Shown one piece after another: positions 1 through 10,499 of a stretch of DNA of 64,000 nucleotides. The notes below the pieces were generated by a model. That model was not told the origin of the DNA. It searched no databases and saw only the letters and a list, made by a program, of their open reading frames with translations. Made by a program: the position numbers and the translations under genes. Location: positions 10,044,001 through 10,108,000 of the forward strand of contig OZ176053.1 of NCBI GenBank assembly GCA_964247055.1, written 5' to 3'. Source of the DNA: Paragordius varius. Its lineage: Eukaryota > Animalia > Nematomorpha. Each line of letters begins with the position of its first letter. Within the stretch, counting starts at the first letter, position 1.

Positions 1-3000
1 TGAAAATCAGTAGGTATCTTGGACTTTCGGGTAGAAAGGGAAGTATGCATACTTGAGCGATTGCAGGAAATATTGATAGAGCTAATATTAATAATAATTT
101 TTCAATATTAAACAATATAAATATGACATATAAAATAGCGCTATATTTAATTAACAGTGGTGTACATAGCTGTTGTAACGAGTGTACATAGACCAAAACC
201 TTCTCCTATGCAAGATTTAATTTACATTTTTTCATGTTACGGTACCTAAAACTGGCTAATTTGATATTTATCTCAAAATTCAATTTGATGATACACAAAA
301 ATAATAACTAGGATAAAAAATATATAATTTGAGCTAGCGTATTCATTTGCCGCAAAAATTATTATTTGTTGACAACCTAGTTTTCTGAAATATTGAGAGA
401 AAATCGAAATCGAGCAAAAAGTGAAAATTAAGGATAACTCAAAAAATAATGATAGAATATGAAATATTATTGTTTATTATCATTTTAGGAGATATTTTCA
501 ATATATAAATAGCCTAAAATCATATAGTTAGGGTTTCTATAAAATATCAGGTCAAAAGATGGCGTTTTTCTTTTATCGCACTTAAAAGACAAAAAAATTT
601 AATGAAACTTTATTTAAATAATGTGTTTTAATTATTTACTACCTAAACTCACTATTAAAATCTTAACATTCATATTTTATTTAGGAAAATAAACTTCTAT
701 ATCAAAATAAAACTAAAATTATTGTTTTTTATTTTTGCATTTTTTTGTCATCTGGTTTATGAGTGTATGAAAAATTTATACTGTTTTATTTTGGATTCTT
801 AAATTAGTGGGAATTATTAAGTATATAATATATACAAAATAGGATTGAAAATAAGTGGAATATCAACCAACAATCCGTACAAATCCCAATACAAATATTA
901 ATTTGTCATAAAACAGACTTGTTACAGGAAATTGTAAGGATTGTTGGTTGATATTCCACTACTTTTTAATCCTATTTTAATTGTATACTTAATAATGCCT
1001 AATCATGTAAGAATCCAAAATAAAACAGTATAAATTTTTTATATACTCATAAACCAGATGATAAAAAATGCAAAAATAAAAAAACAATATTTTTGGTTTT
1101 ATTTTGATTTAGAAGTTTATTTTACTGAATAAAATATGAATGTAAAGATTAGTGAGTTTAGGTAGTAAATAATTAAAAAAAATTATTTTAATATAGTTTA
1201 AATAAATTTTTTTGTGTTTTAAGTGTGATAAAAGAAAAACGCCATCTTTTGACCTGATATTTTATAGAAACCCTATATGATTTTAGGCTATTGATATATT
1301 GAAAATATCTCCTAAAATGATATTAAACGATAATATTTCATATTTTTCTTATTTTTTGAGTTATCCTTAATTTTCACTTTTTGCCCGATTTCGATTTTCT
1401 CTCAATAATTCAGAAAACTAGGTTGTCAACAAAAAAAAATTTTTGCGGCAAATGAATACGCTGGTCATAAGCTATCTCATGAAAAAAAATTTTTCGTTAA
1501 ATCAAAATGACCCTCTTTTTTGCACACAGTGTTATATATTACCTTTCATTTAATACTTTGCGCTTAAACGTATGCATTGAAGGAATAGAAATCTTTATTG
1601 TCATAAAAACTATGGTATTCATTAATATAAAAAAAGACTATAATTCCACACTTATGCATACGGAAAAACCGACGTTCGACATATTTCTGCTATTTTAAAA
1701 TTGAAACGTAAAATATTTATGTACCTGGCTTACTATGCATCGTTTTCTACCCTTAAAAATCAATAAAATTAACTATAAAAAGTTTTTCAAAAATACTCCT
1801 AGTGTACTTTTATTACAGCGCTGGGTGCTCCAAACTCCCTCTAAATACACGGCCATCGAATAATAATTTTAATATATATGTATGTATGTATGTAACTAAC
1901 CGAAAAGAAGGGGCCAAAGGGACTCTGTCCCCATTATTTGTGGTAGGCCGAGAACTTGTGAAATAAAGATTGCCAAACTAAGCATCACTTGATGAGCTGA
2001 ACACATTGAACCTCTCAAATTTATAGGTGCCACTTCGGCCAGATAGATTGAAACCGCCCCTGAAGCTATGCCTAAAAATGTGTTTTACATAATATCTTTC
2101 AAATGTTTAATTTTATCATTCATAAGTTGATAAAATAATTAAAGATTGAATTATAAATTGTTATATTTTTTATGTTTCCAATATATTCTTACCATTATTG
2201 AAACCAATGAAGAGCCGTGCTATAATGAGCATTTCGTAAGAGGATGCAAGTTTGCAGGTTAGAATAAGGATTGCGGCCAAGAATGTCAATATATTATTCG
2301 TAATTAATGTACGTTTCCTTGATAAAACGACACAAAATGTAATATGAGAAAATTAATTTATGTATACCGCAAAAAAACTAATTAAAATCTCAAGTTGACG
2401 ATTGTTTCTCATTTTTAAGTACCGCTAGTTTCTCCAAAACAAAAAAAGGTTAAATTAAACAATTTGTAATTAGTATCCAATCCATACAACCTTTGAATGT
2501 AAATGAATTAATTACTTTCTTTGTCATTAACGCAAATTACTATAGATTTAGAAATATCAAAAATTTAATTAGCACTTACTCAATACAATAACTAAAACAA
2601 CGCATAATATTTAAAAAAATTAAATCACACATAGGACTCCCCAATCATTTCTCATAATAAATAATAAACAGCGAACATAAACTAATTGGCGGTTCATTTT
2701 GTATTAATCAACACTTGGCTACAACACACTCATTTTAGTCCTTCGATTCAAATTGGGGTAGTTGGATACCCCAGGACTGTTTAAAATCAAATACTTTAAA
2801 AAGTATAGAAGGAATCGAAACCATGGCAAAATTTTGCACTTATATAACATTAATAAACCGAAATATATTACTAATTTTAAGTTAAAACCGAAAGGTAAAA
2901 ATTTCGTAAAAGTGACATGTGTGAAATGGTAAAATTAAAAAATAATACAAATAGAACCGCTTTTTCTATTTCTATCCATGTAAGATTTAATATAAATAAA

Positions 3001-4547
3001 AAATTATCTTTGTTTTTACCCTTAAAATTAAATGAAGACGATATTTTGCAAAAATTTTATAAAATAAAAATGGCGGCCAAGTAATTTGACATGAAACTTT
3101 TTTTCAAAACAAAATTTTATTTAGATATTTTGGCTTATTTATATAATTTTTATTAGGATAGAAGCAAAAATTTAAATTGGGACCGTTTCCTTCAGTAGTT
3201 TTTTAAAAATTATAATTTAAATTTAGTCTGGGGTATTTAGATACCCCAATTTGAATCGAAGTGTTAAAATCGGCATTCTCTTAAACTTAGTAGTTTGTGA
3301 GTATTACGCCATCGTATCTAAAAAACAATAGATCCTTCTTTTAAAATTTGTTTAAAGATAGTTGTAAAATAATTCCAAATATTAATGTAAAAAAGCTGAA
3401 TATATAATATAAAATTTAATTCAATTCAATCATTGCTGCTCAAAAAGGGTCATGATGCAGATTAATTTCTATCATAATTGGAGCCATTATGGCGAAGTTT
3501 ATCCTGTAATTATTAAAAGAAAATTACCGGCCTAAAAAGTCGCAAAAGAATCCGGATGATAAACCGCCAAACAGACCACTCATATTGGCTATGGCAACGG
3601 TTAAAGCCCAATAACCTGTCACTTGAGATTTTCTCATATATATGTTGTGTCTGTGATAGTAGGTCGTATTATACCAACCCGTAACAATCTTAGAAATATG
3701 ATAATAATAATAATAATAATTATTTTTATCAAATTAAAAGTTAAGCAATTATTTATATGCAATTGTTTATGCTTATTTAAGGCATTTTGAATATTATCAC
3801 AAATACTTTCTGTTTTAGATAAATATAATGGAAAAAAATGATATATTTATGTGTTTAATATTTAAATCAAAATTAAAATTATCTTTTTTTATGATGGATC
3901 TACCTTTTGTGGTGCGTTAACCACACCAATGGCCCAACCATATTGAAATGAACTTAAGGTTATGGTTAAAACTGTGATTGCCAACATGCGTGTCAATTTC
4001 TAATTGAGAAAAAATACACTATTGAAATAAATAATAAACTAAGTTTCTCAAGTTTGAATGCCATTACCTTATTTTTAACATGAATATGCGTATTAACATC
4101 CAGCGGTTGTGGAACATGGTCAGAAACATTACTCACTACTGCGCGGGGAAATATAGATTTGCGGGTAGTTCGTCTTCGAATATAATCAATCTCTCTGCCT
4201 TCCGTATCGAGGGGACCTTCATCCTGGTGACTGAAATTACTAACCTGAATATTGGCTAGGGATGGTTTAAGTTCCTCGTGCATCTCATCCAACTTGGTTA
4301 AGCGGTCAACCGATAAAGTCATTCTATGCTTTTTGGCTGCAGCGCCTAAATTAGCTATTTTTTGGACCAAACTTGGCCGATTAGCTGAGACATCGTAAGT
4401 GGCTAACCTTGGACGTTCAAATTTCGATAACTTTGGTTCGTTCGGTGCTGGAATTTTATTAGACGGCGTTAATTCAGGGACAGGGGCTACATTACCCTTT
4501 ATAAATCCGTTTTTTAGTTGTCTAATTGTTTCCTCCTTTTGTTCCAT
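1..4547 (-). CDS. SLC2A/GLUT-family facilitated sugar transporter, paralogue A (multi-exon, continues past window start)
   Basis: Hand-spliced GT-AG exons 4547-4068, 3999-3904 (KLTRMLAITVLTITLSSFQYGWAIGVVNAPQK), 3688-3528 (...GLFGGLSSGFFCDFLGR), 2317-2193 (KRTLITNN...SSYEMLIIARLFIGFNNG), 2071-1901 (IYLAEVAPINLRGSMCSAHQV...), 81-1 (LSIFPAIAQVCILPFLPESPRYLLIF). Sugar-porter motifs present: GWAIGVVNAP, E-x-A-P-x-x-L-R-G, PESPRYL. Exons 2-5 are 96/161/125/171 nt, identical to the plus-strand paralogue. Confidence 0.93.
336..1462. mobile_element. Foldback/large-TIR non-autonomous element (near-perfect ~1.1-kb palindrome) in an intron of GLUT paralogue A
   Basis: Left arm ~336-887 (agcgtattcatttgccgcaaaaat...agtggaatatcaaccaacaatcc) is the reverse complement of right arm ~928-1462 with scattered substitutions and indels. 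Spacer ~40 bp. No ORF; no clear TSD found. Confidence 0.85.
2708..3267 (+). mobile_element. piggyBac-like (TTAA-flanked) MITE, copy 1
   Basis: TCAA-CACTT...cttcgattcaaattggggta start; taccccaatttgaatcgAAGTG-TTAA end. Homologous to copies at 11628, 31827 and 42277. Lies in an intron of GLUT paralogue A. Confidence 0.85.
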
Positions 4548-5570
4548 GTTTGATTGATTTCAAAATTGTGTAAAGATACCAATGTATGAGGTAATTAAGT
4601 AAATTTATTCATTGATGAATATGAAGTTATTGGGGCGCATATCTCAAATATTTACGGTTTAAAAAAATTGGTTATCGAAATTCAATATTATTTTAACCCT
4701 TTCATAAAGTTATGTGATTGATAAGGCGCCTATTAATCATGATAAAAATTAAATTTATAAATATTTTTTCAATATTTAAGTTAAACAAATATAAAAGTTT
4801 ATATAAGGTATAAAAGATAAGGAAAAAAGTGCCGTTTTTATGCCAACGTTATTATAATATATCTATCTATATTGATATATTGTTGCACATTAATAACATG
4901 TTAATAGCTTAAAAACATAGTTTTATCTTTTGTTTATTTTTTCAAAAAAACTAAATTGTTTCAATCAGCAAAATCAAGTGATATGCATTTCATATTCAAT
5001 ATAGTATATGAAAATTGGGATTTATCGTTATATTTTTTCGTATTGTCAAATCATAAAAACCATAATGTACCCAAAGTGGGCCCAAAAATTCAATCAATTT
5101 ATTATGGTTACGATTTGGTCCAATTTTGTGTGTGCACATATGAATAATATAAAAAATATCCGTAGGCTATTAACTTTCAATTGTCACAATTTAACGGTAA
5201 AAAATTCACCCAAATTGAACTATATATTCAAAACTAGTACATGTTTCCATATAAAATCTTAAAATACAATTGGTTGTTTGGTTGATTGGTTGGTTAGTTG
5301 GTTGGTTGTGGTAAAGAAATAAACTCCTGGACATAAAGCGTAAATTCCCATAAAATTGAGACGATGAGTTATTGAATTAAATGTCATATAGGCGCTTAAG
5401 GGCCCATAAAATGAATAGTCAATTTGTAATGTAAGGATTATATAAATTTGTTAATAATATTTATAATAAATTTACATAGTTTGAACGGATTATAAAGAAC
5501 TCAATTTTATGCACATTTCATCGTTAGATTAAGGTTAATATTTATATCTAATAATATTAAGAGGATAAAT
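4548..5570. promoter_or_regulatory. Probable shared bidirectional promoter/5' UTR region between divergent GLUT paralogues
   Basis: About 1 kb separates the two divergent ATGs (4547 minus, 5571 plus); contains a (TTGG)n tract at ~5272-5310. Regulatory role is inferred from the geometry only. Confidence 0.5.
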
Positions 5571-8500
5571 ATGAGTGATAAAAATATAATCCCTAACAAT
5601 AATAAATCCAAAAGAAAAATAACTAAATTTATAAGGAGAAAATCTTCTAATGATTCTCTGGAAAACGGTACACCTTCACCCACAGAAGATAATGTAAATG
5701 AGGTTGACAATCCTAATACCAATACAGATTCCATGCCACATCCTAGTCGAATTCACCCAATGACCATCGGAGACTCTGATGAAATTGATGATACAGATTT
5801 CGATTCAATCGATCTGAATGATGATGACGGTGATGCGAATCATGAAAAAATTAATGGAGACCTTCATCAAAAGGTAGATACATTTAAACGACAATCGGCT
5901 CATAGAGTGAGTCGTGTGCGACAAAATGAAGCTGATATAAAACCTAAAACTAGCCACATACGGAAACAAGAATCTGCCCTAAATTTGGTCGAAGTTGGAA
6001 AAAAGATTTCGTTAGTCGAAACACTTGGCGGTGTTCGACGCAGAGATACACAGGAACCAATAAAGGATTTGGTAGACAAAGGATCAGATACGGCTGAACC
6101 AAAGAAAAAAGTTAGTTTTAATAAATATAAACCAACCGTTCCTACCTATCTTATGAATGATATCATGAGTACTAATCCCCAAGAATTGGACGAGGACACC
6201 GAGTTACACGTAAAGAAAAAAGTACGATTTTTTATTTTTCTTTTAATAACGAACAAAGGTGAGAAAATAGAAAATTCGGATGTTCTTCTGTTATTTTTAA
6301 TTGGTTCTATTTCATAGATATTGATGTAAACTAATTTAATTTTTTAGAATGTCACATGTATGCTCCTCTGCACAGTTTCTGCCATTGCATTGAGCTCCTT
6401 ACAATACGGCTGGGCTATTGGAGTAGTTAATGCCCCACAAAAGGTATGAAATACTTATTGTTATAAAATTCAGATATTATAATAATAAGACACCTTGGTC
6501 CAAAATATGATCTATGGAGAAAAATAAATGTGCATTGTGTGTAAATATATAATTTTTCGTTTTTTCTTGCTTAAATTTCATATATTTTGCAACTATGTGA
6601 TCATAAAATATATTACACACTCATTTAAATTTTGCCATATTAACTAATATTATATATATTACCCATATATGCCCAATAAATATGGCTGTTTACTGTATCA
6701 TCTTTCTTACAAATCTATTTGTATTAGATTGTTACTAATTGGTACAATGAAACAAATATTCAGCGCCGTGGTGTCGGTATCTCGTACAGCCACATGACAA
6801 TTCTGTGGGCAATCACGGTTGCCATATACAATGTGAGTGGCTTCTTTGGTGGTTTAATGGCCGGATACTATTGTGACAGATTTGGCAGGCATGATCATTA
6901 ATATGTTTTATAGGAAAAATATAAATAAGACAATGTGTTATTTATTTTGTTTTAGCTATTCTATTTAAAATACCTAATATGAGATGTTAAAGCTAGTAAT
7001 AAACTTTATTTGAATCGTAATTTGGTTAAACAAAAGAGGGCTGTTTTATTTCTATATAAAATCAAGGATATAAATCAAATATATTGGAAAATTATTTTTG
7101 TTTTTTATAATACATTAAAAAGTTGGCAACTGAAATTAGCTAATGCAATAAAAAATTTATCGAAATTAAGCATTTTACATCATAAAACGATCACCCTTTA
7201 AATAGTTTATGATAAAAACAACCAGAAAAAATAGCCAAAATAGCACCTCCTTTTTTAAAAAATAGAATCCTAGCTTAAATATATGTTTCTTATCTTATAT
7301 AAAAATAAATGGTATAAGCGTGCAATTTTTTAAAAAAATTTGGGATTCATTCGCCATTTTTTAGGCGGTATATCAATTTGCTTATATAGCTATAATACCC
7401 GGATAGTTTCACCACTTGGCAATAAGTTTTTATCACCTTCATAACGACGCTATAAATTGAGCCTATAATTTGGGGCAAAGCTCGCTGAAAATTATTTTAA
7501 AAGTAAATTCGACATAAGAGGCGAAATACTAGACCTATCCGACCAAAAAATTTAAATAGCGTTTACCTTAATAAAATATGATGGTGACTGCAAACCTAAT
7601 GACATTGCTTTTTCCATTATTAAATTACAAAGTAAATTGTTATTATATGATTTATTTTTTATCACAGAAAGAAGACTTTATTGATTAATAATGCCATAAC
7701 GTTTGTTGGGTCAATTTTATTTTTAACATCCAAAGTAGCATCATCGTACGAAATGGTAATTCTTGGCAGATTATTTATTGGATATAACTGTGGTAACTTA
7801 CAAATTAATTAATACTAACCCTAACCATGGCATTTTAAACTATTTAATCCAAAACATTTTTTTCCTATTTATTAATTATTTATATTGTCATATTTTATAA
7901 CATCAATAGGAGTCAGCTCAAGTAGTGTGGCCATTTATTTGAGCGAAATCGCACCAGTCAACCTCAGAGGAGCTGTATGTTCAGCTCATCAAGTTTTTCT
8001 CAGTTTAGGCATAGTGTTATCCCAAATTATAGGATTGCCACATGTTTTGGGTACCGAATCCGGTTGGCCAATCTTATTTTGTAAACATATTTAATAGTTT
8101 TACTCTCAGTATTTTAAATATCTTTTAAACTATTATTCGTAATCGTTTACCAATTTAGCACTTGCAATTGTTCCCGCTATCATACAATTGGTGGTTTTGC
8201 CAATGATGCCAGAAAGTCCAAGATATTTGTTGATTTATAAAGGGAGAGAACAGAGAGCTAGAAAAGGTGTTCCATTCTAATTTTCATTAAGAAAGATTGA
8301 GAATTGAGTTCTACCTATGGATTTATAAAATAACAATATTTTTGGTTGATTATCATATATAATAATTAAATTTCATTTAATATAAAATGAAGCATTACAA
8401 CGACTCCGAAATAGTGATGATGTTGAAGATGAAATTCAACAAATGAAGGTGGAATACGAAGATCAAAAGCGATTGCCTAAGGTCACATGGTCAGATATGA

Positions 8501-10499
8501 TTAGAAAGGGAGTATATCGAAAACCGCTAATTATATCAAGTGAAACGCATGTTAGTCAGCAACTCTCAGCTATAAGCGCCGTAAAATATAATTTTAATGT
8601 TAAATATAGGAAATGTATTTTCTTAAAAAGAGGATACCCAGGGTGATATTATAAAGTGTGCGCATTTTTATCTAAAAATGTTCCAAAATATATTCTACAA
8701 GCCTTAATAATTTTATTTTACGCTAATGTTTTGGTGTCAGCCAAAGGAATATTTATGATTAAAGAGCATACGGAAAATTTGAATTTAGCAAGGCTTTGAA
8801 ATGCAAGGAACGGGAACCGGTCTGGTCCCTAGGAAGACTAGAGTCAGGGTGGTTCCTGTGAACCAGGTGGGCTTGTTGAAGATTTAACGGTTACAGAACC
8901 GGTTTTTTTATATTTGGAACCGGTTCCAATTGGGTTAAATTATTTTTACAACATAATATCATAATAATATAAACTATAATATCAGCAATAGATCACAACA
9001 TAATTTATTAGGAAAAACAAAAGGCCAAATTTATAAGTGGTAGGTGATAAGTGTGTCATTAATGGAGATTTTTATAAAACTATAATGATTTCAACAAGGA
9101 ATCAGCTGGTCAAACTATTTTTCAGATTTGAAATTATAAATTATATGATCATTTTGAAAATGTTTGAACAACAAATGATATTCTTCCATTTTGATGGGCC
9201 CGAAAAAAGGTTATCATAGAATAAAATTTAAATAATAAATTAAACAATAATTTTTTTATTTTAAAAATATAAACATATGGGAATCACTTAGTTGGAGGTG
9301 GAACCGAGACTAATTCCTAAGATTTTTAAATGGAGCAGGGGTGGTATTAACCCAACGAAACCGGTTCCTGATATTTTAGCAATCGGGTTTCGGTTTAATA
9401 TGGTTCAGGTTCCGGTTCGAATCCCTGAATTCAGTCATTTTTCAATATTTTTTAGTTAAATAATTTAGTAATTTAAGATAAATATAATTTTTCATCTAAA
9501 ATTTAACATTCCCACAAATTTATTGGTATATTACCAGTTATAGTGTACATAAAGCGATTTAGTATAACAAACTTTATATCATATATATACCATAGGTTTT
9601 ATCCTATTCCACAAGTTTATTCCTTAAAGCAAATCTCTCGGACGACAATGCAAAGTATGCTACCATTGGGATGGGAGTTTTGTACTTTTTATTGTGCGGA
9701 CTCTCTTCTCTAGTGGTGGAACGAGCCGGTCGAAGAACACTTTATTTAACCGGGTTGGGTGGAATGTGGTTTAGCTCAATTCTATTGACCATCATGTTAG
9801 TGCAAAGCAATAGGGGCAAAACATGGGCATCATATTTATCCATACTCTTTGTCTTTACATACGTGGGATTTTGTGCAATAGGACCAAGTATAATAACTTC
9901 TATTGCTATAATCTATTTTTGAACAATGTTAAATAGCCATATTTACAAACAAAAATTATAACGCAACATTTCATACATTGACCGTATAACTAATAAATAA
10001 TTTAAGGTGTCATTGCGTGGTTCATCGCTTCCGAATTGTTTACGCAAGCCGCTCGGCCAAAAGGCGCAAGCCTTGCTGTATGTTTCAATTGGGGGTCAAG
10101 TTTTATAGCTGTGCTATTATTTCCTATCTTATTAGTAAATAATTTAAATACTTAACTTTTTATTGGAATAGTGTGTTTTAACTTTTCTATTAATATCCAT
10201 CACTTTAAATATTAAAACTAAACAAATTTTACACGAATATATATTTTTATTGTCAATAGGCAACTATTGGAGATTACACCTTTTTAGTGCTCATGGTTCT
10301 ACTTACCCTATTTTGGTTTTATACCTACTTCTTTTTGCCTGAAACTCAAGGACGTACTTCGGATGAGCTTTCACGCCTATTTATGTCAAACGAAGAAAAA
10401 AGTGCCATTTATAAATTTTGGAAAAATTATCGATTTCGTCAAGCAAAACGACGACATCATCCCCACAGACATCAACATAACTATGATACTCGGATGTAA
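5571..10499 (+). CDS. SLC2A/GLUT-family facilitated sugar transporter, paralogue B, with 217-aa cytoplasmic N-terminal extension
   Basis: Exons 5571-6221, 6348-6443 (LQYGWAIGVVNAPQK), 6728-6888 (ends at GC donor), 7668-7792, 7910-8080, 8159-~8265 (PESPRYL), 8393-8580 (SQQLSAISA), 9596-9887 (VVERAGRRTL), 10007-~10134 (WFIASELF...NW), 10260-10499 (PETQGRT...stop). All 12-TM sugar-porter signatures appear in order, and the frame is consistent across junctions. Confidence 0.95.
8804..9427. mobile_element. Degenerate non-autonomous DNA transposon with subterminal GAACCGG motifs (hAT-like)
   Basis: Multiple gaaccgg/ccggttc motifs cluster at both ends in opposite orientation; right end ...ccggttcgaatccctg resembles the reverse complement of left end caaggaacgggaaccgg. 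No matching TSD. Intronic in GLUT B. Confidence 0.5.

Follow-up and report, generated by a model that had tools for sequence, protein, structure and literature searches.

The 64,000-nucleotide stretch of the Paragordius varius genome analyzed here (assembly GCA_964247055.1, contig OZ176053.1, positions 10,044,001 to 10,108,000 of the forward strand; hereafter the window) carries near its start two divergently oriented genes of the SLC2A (GLUT) transporter type, paralogues A and B. This report is concerned with paralogue B, and in particular with the residues lining its predicted sugar-binding pocket. The gene was put together from homology and splice signals as 10 exons comprising 2160 nucleotides (nt) and 719 codons, and its junctions rest on homology, reading phase and conservation (Table 1). 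The only stop is the terminal one; internal stops, which the initial annotation had named as a possible sign of a pseudogene, are thus absent. Eight introns are of the GT-AG type, and intron 3 is GC-AG (donor AG/GCATGA, window 6889-6894; slashes mark exon boundaries here and in Table 1). No in-frame GT alternative to this donor was found nearby, and in the hairworm Gordionus the corresponding intron of the B orthologue, matching in position and phase, begins with GT. The segment covering the GC donor (6799-7682) was reproduced without differences by a DNA contig of the public run X1. The exons of 96, 161 and 188 nt probably correspond in size to exons of human SLC2A1. In addition, the strings quoted in the initial annotation for transmembrane helices (TM) 7, 8, 10 and 11 are all present in the ten-exon model.

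Table 1. Features of the two paralogues in the window. Residue equivalences (B = GLUT1) follow the numbering of the 492-amino-acid (aa) mammalian GLUT1 (P0168).
Feature	Position	Strand	Content
Paralogue A, 5' half	1..4547	-	Head-to-head with B; runs off the window start
Paralogue A, exon 1	4547 down to ~4068	-	
Paralogue A, TM1-TM6 exons	near 3996-3901, 3691-3527, 2337-2191, 2072-1899, 91-2	-	
A-B intergenic region	4548-5570		1023 bp, common to both divergent genes
Paralogue B	5571-10499	+	10 exons
B exon 1	5571..6221	+	217-aa N-terminal cytoplasmic extension; open reading frame begins at the first ATG past a stop
B exon 2	6348..6443	+	96 nt, 32 aa; TM1, ...LSSLQYGWAIGVVNAPQK; Y26, W28, A29, I30 (GLUT1 numbering)
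B exon 3	6728..6888	+	161 nt; loop 1 with NET glycosylation sequon, TM2, DRFG(R) motif
B exon 4	7668..7792	+	TM3 and start of TM4; Pfam Sugar_tr positions 76-114
B exon 5	7910..8080	+	TM4-TM5; E146, R153, Q161 (SAHQVFLSLG); clade-specific P141A, G157C, L162V
B exon 6	8159..8266	+	TM6, PESPRYLL motif
B exon 7	8393..8580	+	188 nt; intracellular helical domain and first half of TM7, ETHVSQQLSAISA
B exon 7 residues	S499 codon 8575-8577	+	H490=Q279, Q493/Q494=Q282/Q283, A497=G286, S499=N288 (PDB alignment, GLUT1 residues 228-289)
B exon 8	9596..9887	+	Second half of TM7, TM8, TM9, start of TM10; VERAGRR
B exon 8 residues	Y530 codon 9683-9685	+	S503=Y292, Y530=N317, C534=T321, C593=F379, A594=E380 (PDB alignment, GLUT1 residues 291-383, and pocket table)
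B exon 9	10007..10134	+	Remainder of TM10 and TM11 (PDB alignment, GLUT3 residues 384-422)
B exon 9 residues		+	S598=G384 (codon split by intron), V599=P385, A601=P387, W602=W388, E607, R614, N625=N411, W626, S629=N415
B exon 10	10260..10499	+	TM12, PETQGR, 45-aa basic His-rich C-terminal tail, TAA stop
TM7 string	crosses exon 7/8 junction	+	ETHVSQQLSAISA/VLSYST
TM8 string	9656-9694	+	YATIGMGVLYFLL
TM10 string	crosses exon 8/9 junction	+	FCAIGP/S/VIAWF
TM11 string	10084-10104	+	FNWGSSF

Close relatives of paralogue B were found in one other hairworm. With exon 8 as the query, a profile-free search across 1.8 billion representative proteins returned a single relative at 82% identity, the next being at or below about 50%, and this relative belongs to Gordionus sp. 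m RMFG-2023 (Nematomorpha), whose full-length protein (XP_065320574.1, P0151) is 73-75% identical to B. In Gordionus, P0151 lies head-to-head with a second Sugar_tr gene (P0152), in the same layout as A and B. Exon 5 of A is 78% identical to P0152 against 63% to B or P0151 (tblastn), which pairs A with P0152 and B with P0151 as orthologues and places the A/B duplication before the species split. The Gordionus genes, annotated only as "SLC2A1-like", share with B the derived pocket, and with A and B the conserved N-terminal block, described below; the P0151 gene spans 32 kb, in contrast to the 5 kb occupied by B in the window. Word searches with P0151 and P0001, together with the exon 8 search of representative proteins, yielded only Gordionus proteins as further members of this A/B clade. 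Paralogue A has much longer introns than B, and the intergenic region between the two may be a bidirectional promoter. The G+C content of the window (~27%) matches that published for the Gordionus genome (26.9%; bioRxiv 10.1101/2023.06.26.546503).

Exons 3-10 of B match the Pfam family Sugar_tr (PF00083) in order over profile positions 43-452; seven of them exceed the gathering cut-off of 22.3 bits and exon 3 falls slightly under it at 21.4 bits, and the same search gave no match for exon 1 or the 32-aa exon 2. When exons 5, 7, 8 and 9 were compared one by one with PDB sequences (phmmer), GLUT1 or GLUT3 ranked top for exons 7, 8 and 9, the best matches to these exons being GLUT1, GLUT3 and GLUT4, and GLUT5 ranked top for exon 5. 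Together with the QQLS motif in TM7, a feature of class-I placement, these matches assign B by family to the class-I (GLUT1-type) facilitative carriers. It is ~41-43% identical to vertebrate and chelicerate members and 48% identical to that of Priapulus, and it shares with the vertebrate class-I proteins (SLC2A1/3/4; PDB 4pyp, 4zw9, 7wsm) and invertebrate Glut1 the 12-TM fold with its intracellular helical domain, the QLS motif, the loop-1 sequon and the GRK, PESPR, ERAGRR and PETxGR motifs.

The residues on which gating depends are likewise conserved. R92, R126, E146, R153, PESPR, E329, R333/R334, E393, R400, E454 and R458, which form the gating and salt-bridge set, are kept in B, in P0151 and in the covered part of the P0152 fragment, and the signature motifs RFGRK, PESPR and PETxGR were found in all three proteins. 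W388 and W412 are also kept in B, P0151 and the covered part of P0152, and the loop-1 glycosylation sequon is present in B and P0151. The fold was examined on P0151, which has the same pocket as B and stands in for it here: an AlphaFold model built from a 49-sequence alignment reached a mean predicted local distance difference test (pLDDT) score of 90.3 and superposed on the glucose-bound, outward-occluded GLUT3 (4zw9) with a template-modelling score of 0.95 and a root-mean-square deviation of 1.4 A. By this model, the 12-TM major facilitator superfamily fold with its intracellular helical bundle is preserved in B, and the initial annotation was right to regard both the fold and the cytoplasmic salt-bridge motifs as intact. 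Residues ~182-198 of the P0151 model form an insertion of ~17 aa with pLDDT <50, which is probably a retained intron.

In the substrate site itself, exon-wise alignments to the solved GLUT1 and GLUT3 bear out the substitutions first proposed from the sequence, namely Q279H, N288S, N317Y, E380A and N415S. They equally bear out the retention of Q282, Q283, W388 and N411, and a local alignment that of Q161. The accompanying claim that both prolines of GPGPIP are lost has to be amended, as the motif contains three, of which P383 is kept, P385 is replaced by Val and P387 by Ala. The hexose-coordinating set (Q161, Q282, Q283, N288, N317, W388) is therefore incomplete in B, with Ser for N288 and Tyr for N317. 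The significance of these changes depends on how they are distributed among related carriers, and B was accordingly compared with 146 other GLUT1-like proteins (147 in total). Position 279 varies among Gln, Met and His; Met occupies position 317 in 53/147, mostly arthropod Glut1 including that of Penaeus; position 380 is Ala in 76/147, the commonest state in invertebrate GLUT1-likes, and Glu in 49/147, all of them vertebrates; and position 385 is Ser in 81/147, the majority state in invertebrates. Because they are variable or commonly non-canonical, positions 279, 317, 380 and 385 carry little information when taken singly, and to this extent the substitutions are indeed common in invertebrate GLUTs, a finding that the initial annotation had foreseen as one that would tell against it.

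Other substitutions have a quite different distribution. Ser288 was seen in the hairworm A/B clade only, the residue being Asn in 141/147, and the same restriction was observed for Ser292 (Tyr or Phe in 140/147), Cys379 (Phe in 140/147), Ser384 (Gly in 141/147), Ser415 (Asn in 131/147) and also for Tyr as the particular replacement at position 317; T321C is a further change specific to the clade. Ala387, where 141/147 have Pro, is common to all hairworm paralogues whose sequence covers the position and is not specific to A/B. Thus, part of the hexose-contact shell of B is remodelled, as judged from these alignments, through N288S, N317Y and N415S together with Y292S, F379C and G384S. The remodelling of hexose recognition put forward in the initial annotation stands in so far as it rests on N288S, N317Y and N415S, which are fixed in both paralogues and in Gordionus, but Q279H, E380A, the loss of P385 and the loss of Asn at 317 as such cannot carry it, since these positions are variable or commonly altered elsewhere.

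A scan of conserved columns led in the same direction. In 140 GLUT1-likes from outside the hairworms, 124 columns reach a conservation of 90% or more, and the A/B clade (B, P0151 and the covered part of P0152) departs from 21 of these, comprising 5 of the 12 pocket columns versus 16 of the 112 remaining ones (Fisher p=0.03). The pocket positions were those of a GLUT1 docking and mutagenesis study (PMC9867014), supplemented by the contact residues named in the initial annotation and by G384. The remaining changed columns lie mostly in cavity-lining helices (Y28W, N29A, L162V, G157C, L280V/I, T321C, P387A, A403G, V418A, G419V), and F72Y is a further difference of B from the GLUT1-likes. Compared with class-I GLUTs, B has seven pocket changes plus F72Y, Y28W, N29A, G157C, L162V, A403G, V418A and G419V, and in addition the 217 N-terminal residues of exon 1, which include a conserved block specific to the clade.

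The history of these states was read from trees in which the hairworm proteins form a clade of their own (Shimodaira-Hasegawa-like approximate likelihood ratio test, 100%), placed among ecdysozoan and other GLUT1-likes and resolved as (P0153,P0154) and (P0053,(P0152,(B,P0151))). B is one member of an expansion of GLUT1-like genes peculiar to hairworms. The three A/B sequences available, B, P0151 and P0152, agree in all the derived states of the pocket. The Gordionus paralogues P0153 and P0154 keep N288, N317, F379 and G384, and P0153 also keeps N415, a position beyond the end of the P0154 fragment. P0053 is intermediate, having C379, N384 and T415 yet retaining N288. This distribution indicates that the full derived set arose on the A/B stem and is old and fixed. 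As the remodelled pocket has become fixed beside paralogues with a canonical one, the pattern is that of neofunctionalization rather than decay.

Whether the pocket changes could instead reflect relaxed constraint in a decaying duplicate was considered in the light of natural variation. The B locus is present in two public DNA runs, in which another haplotype or strain occurs at roughly half depth. The listing of differences was confined to the best-supported ones; it contains 19 single-base changes in exons, and 17 of them are synonymous (binomial p about 5e-9, or 1e-9 to 3e-8 over a chance synonymous fraction of 0.22-0.28), which speaks strongly against a pseudogene. Apart from one in-frame AAC (Asn) insertion behind 5594, in the Asn-rich start of exon 1, the length differences listed are intronic or precede the start codon, and none within the exons breaks the frame. 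A pseudogene would fit a member of a tandem pair that has one GC donor and no matching RNA run; however, the 2160 nt are uninterrupted by stops or frameshifts, GC-AG introns are spliced normally, and the derived residues are identical in the sister paralogue and in orthologues that are only 73-75% identical overall. We therefore consider decay very improbable, and B appears from these sequence differences to be a functional gene under purifying selection.

Many intronic insertions and deletions separate the haplotypes at the B locus, and the sampled animals are quite heterozygous. Within intron 7, the stretch ~8800-9440 contains palindromes of the GGAACCGGTTCC type and short inverted repeats, and a repeat search gave only short inverted repeats. 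The depth of the run X4 contig rises there, and the small runs X6 and X7 touch only 9230-9264; the stretch has the look of a dispersed repeat or of part of a transposon.

A similar pocket occurs in nematodes. A distant match from Panagrolaimus (P0110) also has Tyr317 and Ser384, and a search with it revealed a nematode-wide family (P0299-P0366 and P0415) whose C. elegans member, UniProt Q20734, is probably F53H8.3, an identification that depends on this accession and on the label "F53H8.3" given to a member by one source. The pocket of this family is conserved as T/S/A288, A292, Y317, A321, Y379, G380, S384, A411, A/S415, S419, Y30 and D168. It thus resembles the A/B pocket in having S/T/A288, a small residue at 292, Y317, a small residue at 321, S384, A/S415, a changed residue at 379, L162V and L280I/V, and differs from it at 30, 168, 379, 380, 387 and 411, with Y30, D168 and A411, and with P385 and P387 kept. 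Of the conserved columns changed in A/B, 11/21 are also changed in the nematode family, versus 27/101 of the other columns (Fisher p=0.02). The nematode proteins form a separate long-branched clade, whereas A/B is nested among the hairworm GLUT1-likes. A common origin of the two, a grouping named for testing after the first tree had been seen, was rejected by the approximately unbiased test (log-likelihood difference 33, p=0.008), and the likeness of the two pockets is accordingly ascribed to parallel evolution.

F53H8.3 gave no uptake of 2-deoxyglucose in oocytes, in an assay that did not control for its expression at the cell surface (Kitaoka et al., PMC3691140). An identity of the family with FGT-1, the working glucose carrier of C. 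elegans, was rejected, since the C. elegans member begins MVTSRY and bears a generic name; the published fgt-1 primer encodes MGVNDH (PMC3691140). The same study gave E-values against human GLUT1 above 2e-36 for candidates other than FGT-1 and R09B5.11 (PMC3691140). The nematode family is ~35% identical to GLUT1, which is at odds with those values, and a revision of gene models may explain the discrepancy. Trichinella proteins named at source "Facilitated glucose transporter protein" have a canonical pocket. One Trichinella model of 944 aa (P0002, KRY83453.1) contains two GLUT1-like units in tandem, either as a fused prediction or as a real fusion; it had ranked as a close relative by E-value and was rejected as such, being a tandem-fused model with a canonical pocket.

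Taken with its intact gating elements, the altered pocket would be best explained, at a probability of roughly 0.55, if B is a working facilitative carrier with a changed, non-glucose substrate. In GLUT1 and GLUT3 structures, N288 and N317 form hydrogen bonds with the C3 and C4 hydroxyls of glucose, and both residues are replaced in B. On the stem of A/B, before the A/B duplication and the split from Gordionus, the site may have been re-specified through N288S, Y292S, N317Y, T321C, F379C, G384S and N415S, accompanied by second-shell changes in TM1, TM2, TM5 and TM11. With the alternating-access machinery intact, the resulting uniporter would still cycle, binding either another solute or hexoses in a much different manner. 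The presence of S499, Y530, C593, S598 and S629 would, by analogy, abolish or strongly alter glucose recognition, and ordinary glucose uptake would presumably be handled by the canonical-pocket paralogues seen in Gordionus as P0153 and P0154.

The analogy draws on work in both animal and fungal carriers. In GLUT1, N288 forms a hydrogen bond with glucose, and I164 and F379 pack against the C6 group (PMC9867014). In yeast Gal2 and its relatives, a conserved Asn in TM8 adjoins the CH2OH of bound glucose. Substitution by residues of greater bulk or hydrophobicity impairs glucose binding and spares pentoses, which lack this group: Gal2 N376Y does not support growth on glucose and has glucose-insensitive pentose transport, no glucose is taken up by the N376F mutant, and Phe is the natural residue of arabinose carriers at this site (PMC8695581, PMC7000353). 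The engineered Gal2 N376Y/F and the natural L-arabinose carriers NcLAT1 and MtLAT1, with Phe, are like B in having an aromatic residue at the TM8 Asn (PMC8695581, PMC7000353), but they are fungal proton-linked or facilitative hexose carriers and distant homologues of B, in which the position is presumed to be equivalent. The closest published analogue is found in Schistosoma mansoni, in which SGTP2 and SGTP3 are fast-evolving class-I GLUT paralogues that do not transport glucose and occur beside working glucose carriers; the two proteins keep the "invariant" glucose-binding residues, whereas in B those residues are replaced (PMC4653847).

Several observations weigh against a non-glucose carrier. 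The enrichment of changes in the pocket is modest (p about 0.02-0.03), and the retention of Q161, Q282, Q283, W388 and N411 together with the QLS motif fits a sugar-like ligand. The correspondence of Gal2 N376 with GLUT1 N317 is presumed from the "TM8 conserved Asn" of the Gal2 papers and from the likely alignment of the two proteins. The identification of Q20734 as F53H8.3 depends on one source's label, and the oocyte assay lacked a surface control. Among the public sequencing runs no RNA run matched B, X1 and X4 being DNA contigs that extend across introns. Tyr317, which adds bulk, and Cys379, which removes it, both lie near the glucose C6 and might compensate for each other. Penaeus Glut1, which has Met317 and likewise lacks Glu380, is reportedly able to transport glucose, so that single pocket changes are no proof that glucose transport has been lost.

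Some of these points lend themselves to a reading of B as an ordinary hexose (glucose) transporter, in which the pocket has been re-packed, with Y317 set against C379, and its affinity or kinetics tuned for arthropod haemolymph. The class-I placement, the QLS motif and the five core contacts that are kept would all be expected of such a protein, residues other than Asn317 and Glu380 are widespread in invertebrate Glut1 orthologues, and Hxt11 N376M still carries glucose with a raised Michaelis constant (PMC7000353). On the other hand, Asn288 occurs in 141/147 and Ser288 only in the A/B clade, along with six other changes fixed simultaneously in cavity-lining helices; Tyr or Phe at the TM8 Asn of Gal2 abolishes glucose use (PMC8695581, PMC7000353); and the coexisting canonical-pocket paralogues of Gordionus leave A/B free to diverge. 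We consider a hexose transporter of this kind unlikely on balance, although it is the strongest competitor to a carrier of another solute.

The N-terminal extension of B was the ground for a further proposal. Encoded by exon 1, it contains much Asp, Lys, Asn and Ser, and its end is formed by a conserved, membrane-adjoining block, ...YKPTVPTYLMNDIMSTNPQELDEDTELHVKKK. The last ~45 exon 1 residues are conserved in A, B and both Gordionus genes, ending ...PQ.LD..T.(L/I)HVK(K/N)K before TM1, and in paralogue A and both Gordionus genes a GT donor directly follows the block. Some upstream basic or Ser-rich patches also align among these genes, and the first ~95 residues, which are acidic and Asn-rich, are found in B only. 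The extension of paralogue A has 160 aa and ends in the same block. The published model of XP_065320574.1 takes a Met within exon 2 as its first residue and omits the conserved upstream exon for the extension (L001:10001-10384).

Owing to this extension, the initial annotation had compared B with the yeast sensors Snf3 and Rgt2, and B might on that analogy be a transceptor, sensing a nutrient without transporting it and signalling by way of its long N-terminus. The 217 disordered residues, the membrane-adjoining block common to A, B and both Gordionus orthologues, and changes at conserved helix Pro and Gly residues (P141A/S, G157C, P387A, G419V) that could damp the conformational cycle would suit this role. 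However, the tails of Snf3 and Rgt2 are long, C-terminal and devoted to signalling, with conserved repeat motifs, whereas the C-terminal tail of B has only ~45 aa and its extension is N-terminal, without a Pfam or other recognizable domain and with its first part restricted to B. Moreover, arthropod Glut1 isoforms of 740-918 aa with long extensions are common, and the fungal sensors are not orthologous to B. A sensor would also be expected to keep its ligand-binding residues, whereas in B the changes are concentrated at the ligand site and not at the gating elements, the alternating-access salt bridges all being kept. The comparison of the tail with Snf3/Rgt2 is consequently dropped, as the sequence holds no specific evidence for it, and a sensor seems improbable; of the two functions first suggested, sensor or carrier for another solute, the carrier is the better half. 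The extension itself may serve sorting or regulation.

If B is a carrier for another solute, the nematode family raises a bolder possibility, that the hairworm A/B proteins and the nematode proteins converged on the same rebuilt pocket and define a new SLC2-type substrate class, with A/B serving the uptake of a non-glucose solute from host haemolymph. This proposal is speculative and rather doubtful at present. Trehalose is the main insect blood sugar, and it would, were the proposal true, be the obvious if speculative candidate for the A/B solute; a polyol or a sugar lacking C6 may be considered as well.

A literature search found no paper linking Nematomorpha with glucose transporters. Few transporters are as well understood as the GLUT1-type carriers, in which N288 and N317 count as sugar contacts that hardly ever vary. 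A natural clade that has replaced both of them, with five neighbours, under what appears to be purifying selection would thus represent a natural experiment on substrate specificity in SLC2, to which the nematode family may provide a second, genetically tractable entry point via C. elegans. In addition, hairworms living inside insects and other arthropods are said to take in nutrients across the body wall, and the putative A/B carriers hint at how a juvenile might do so in its arthropod host.

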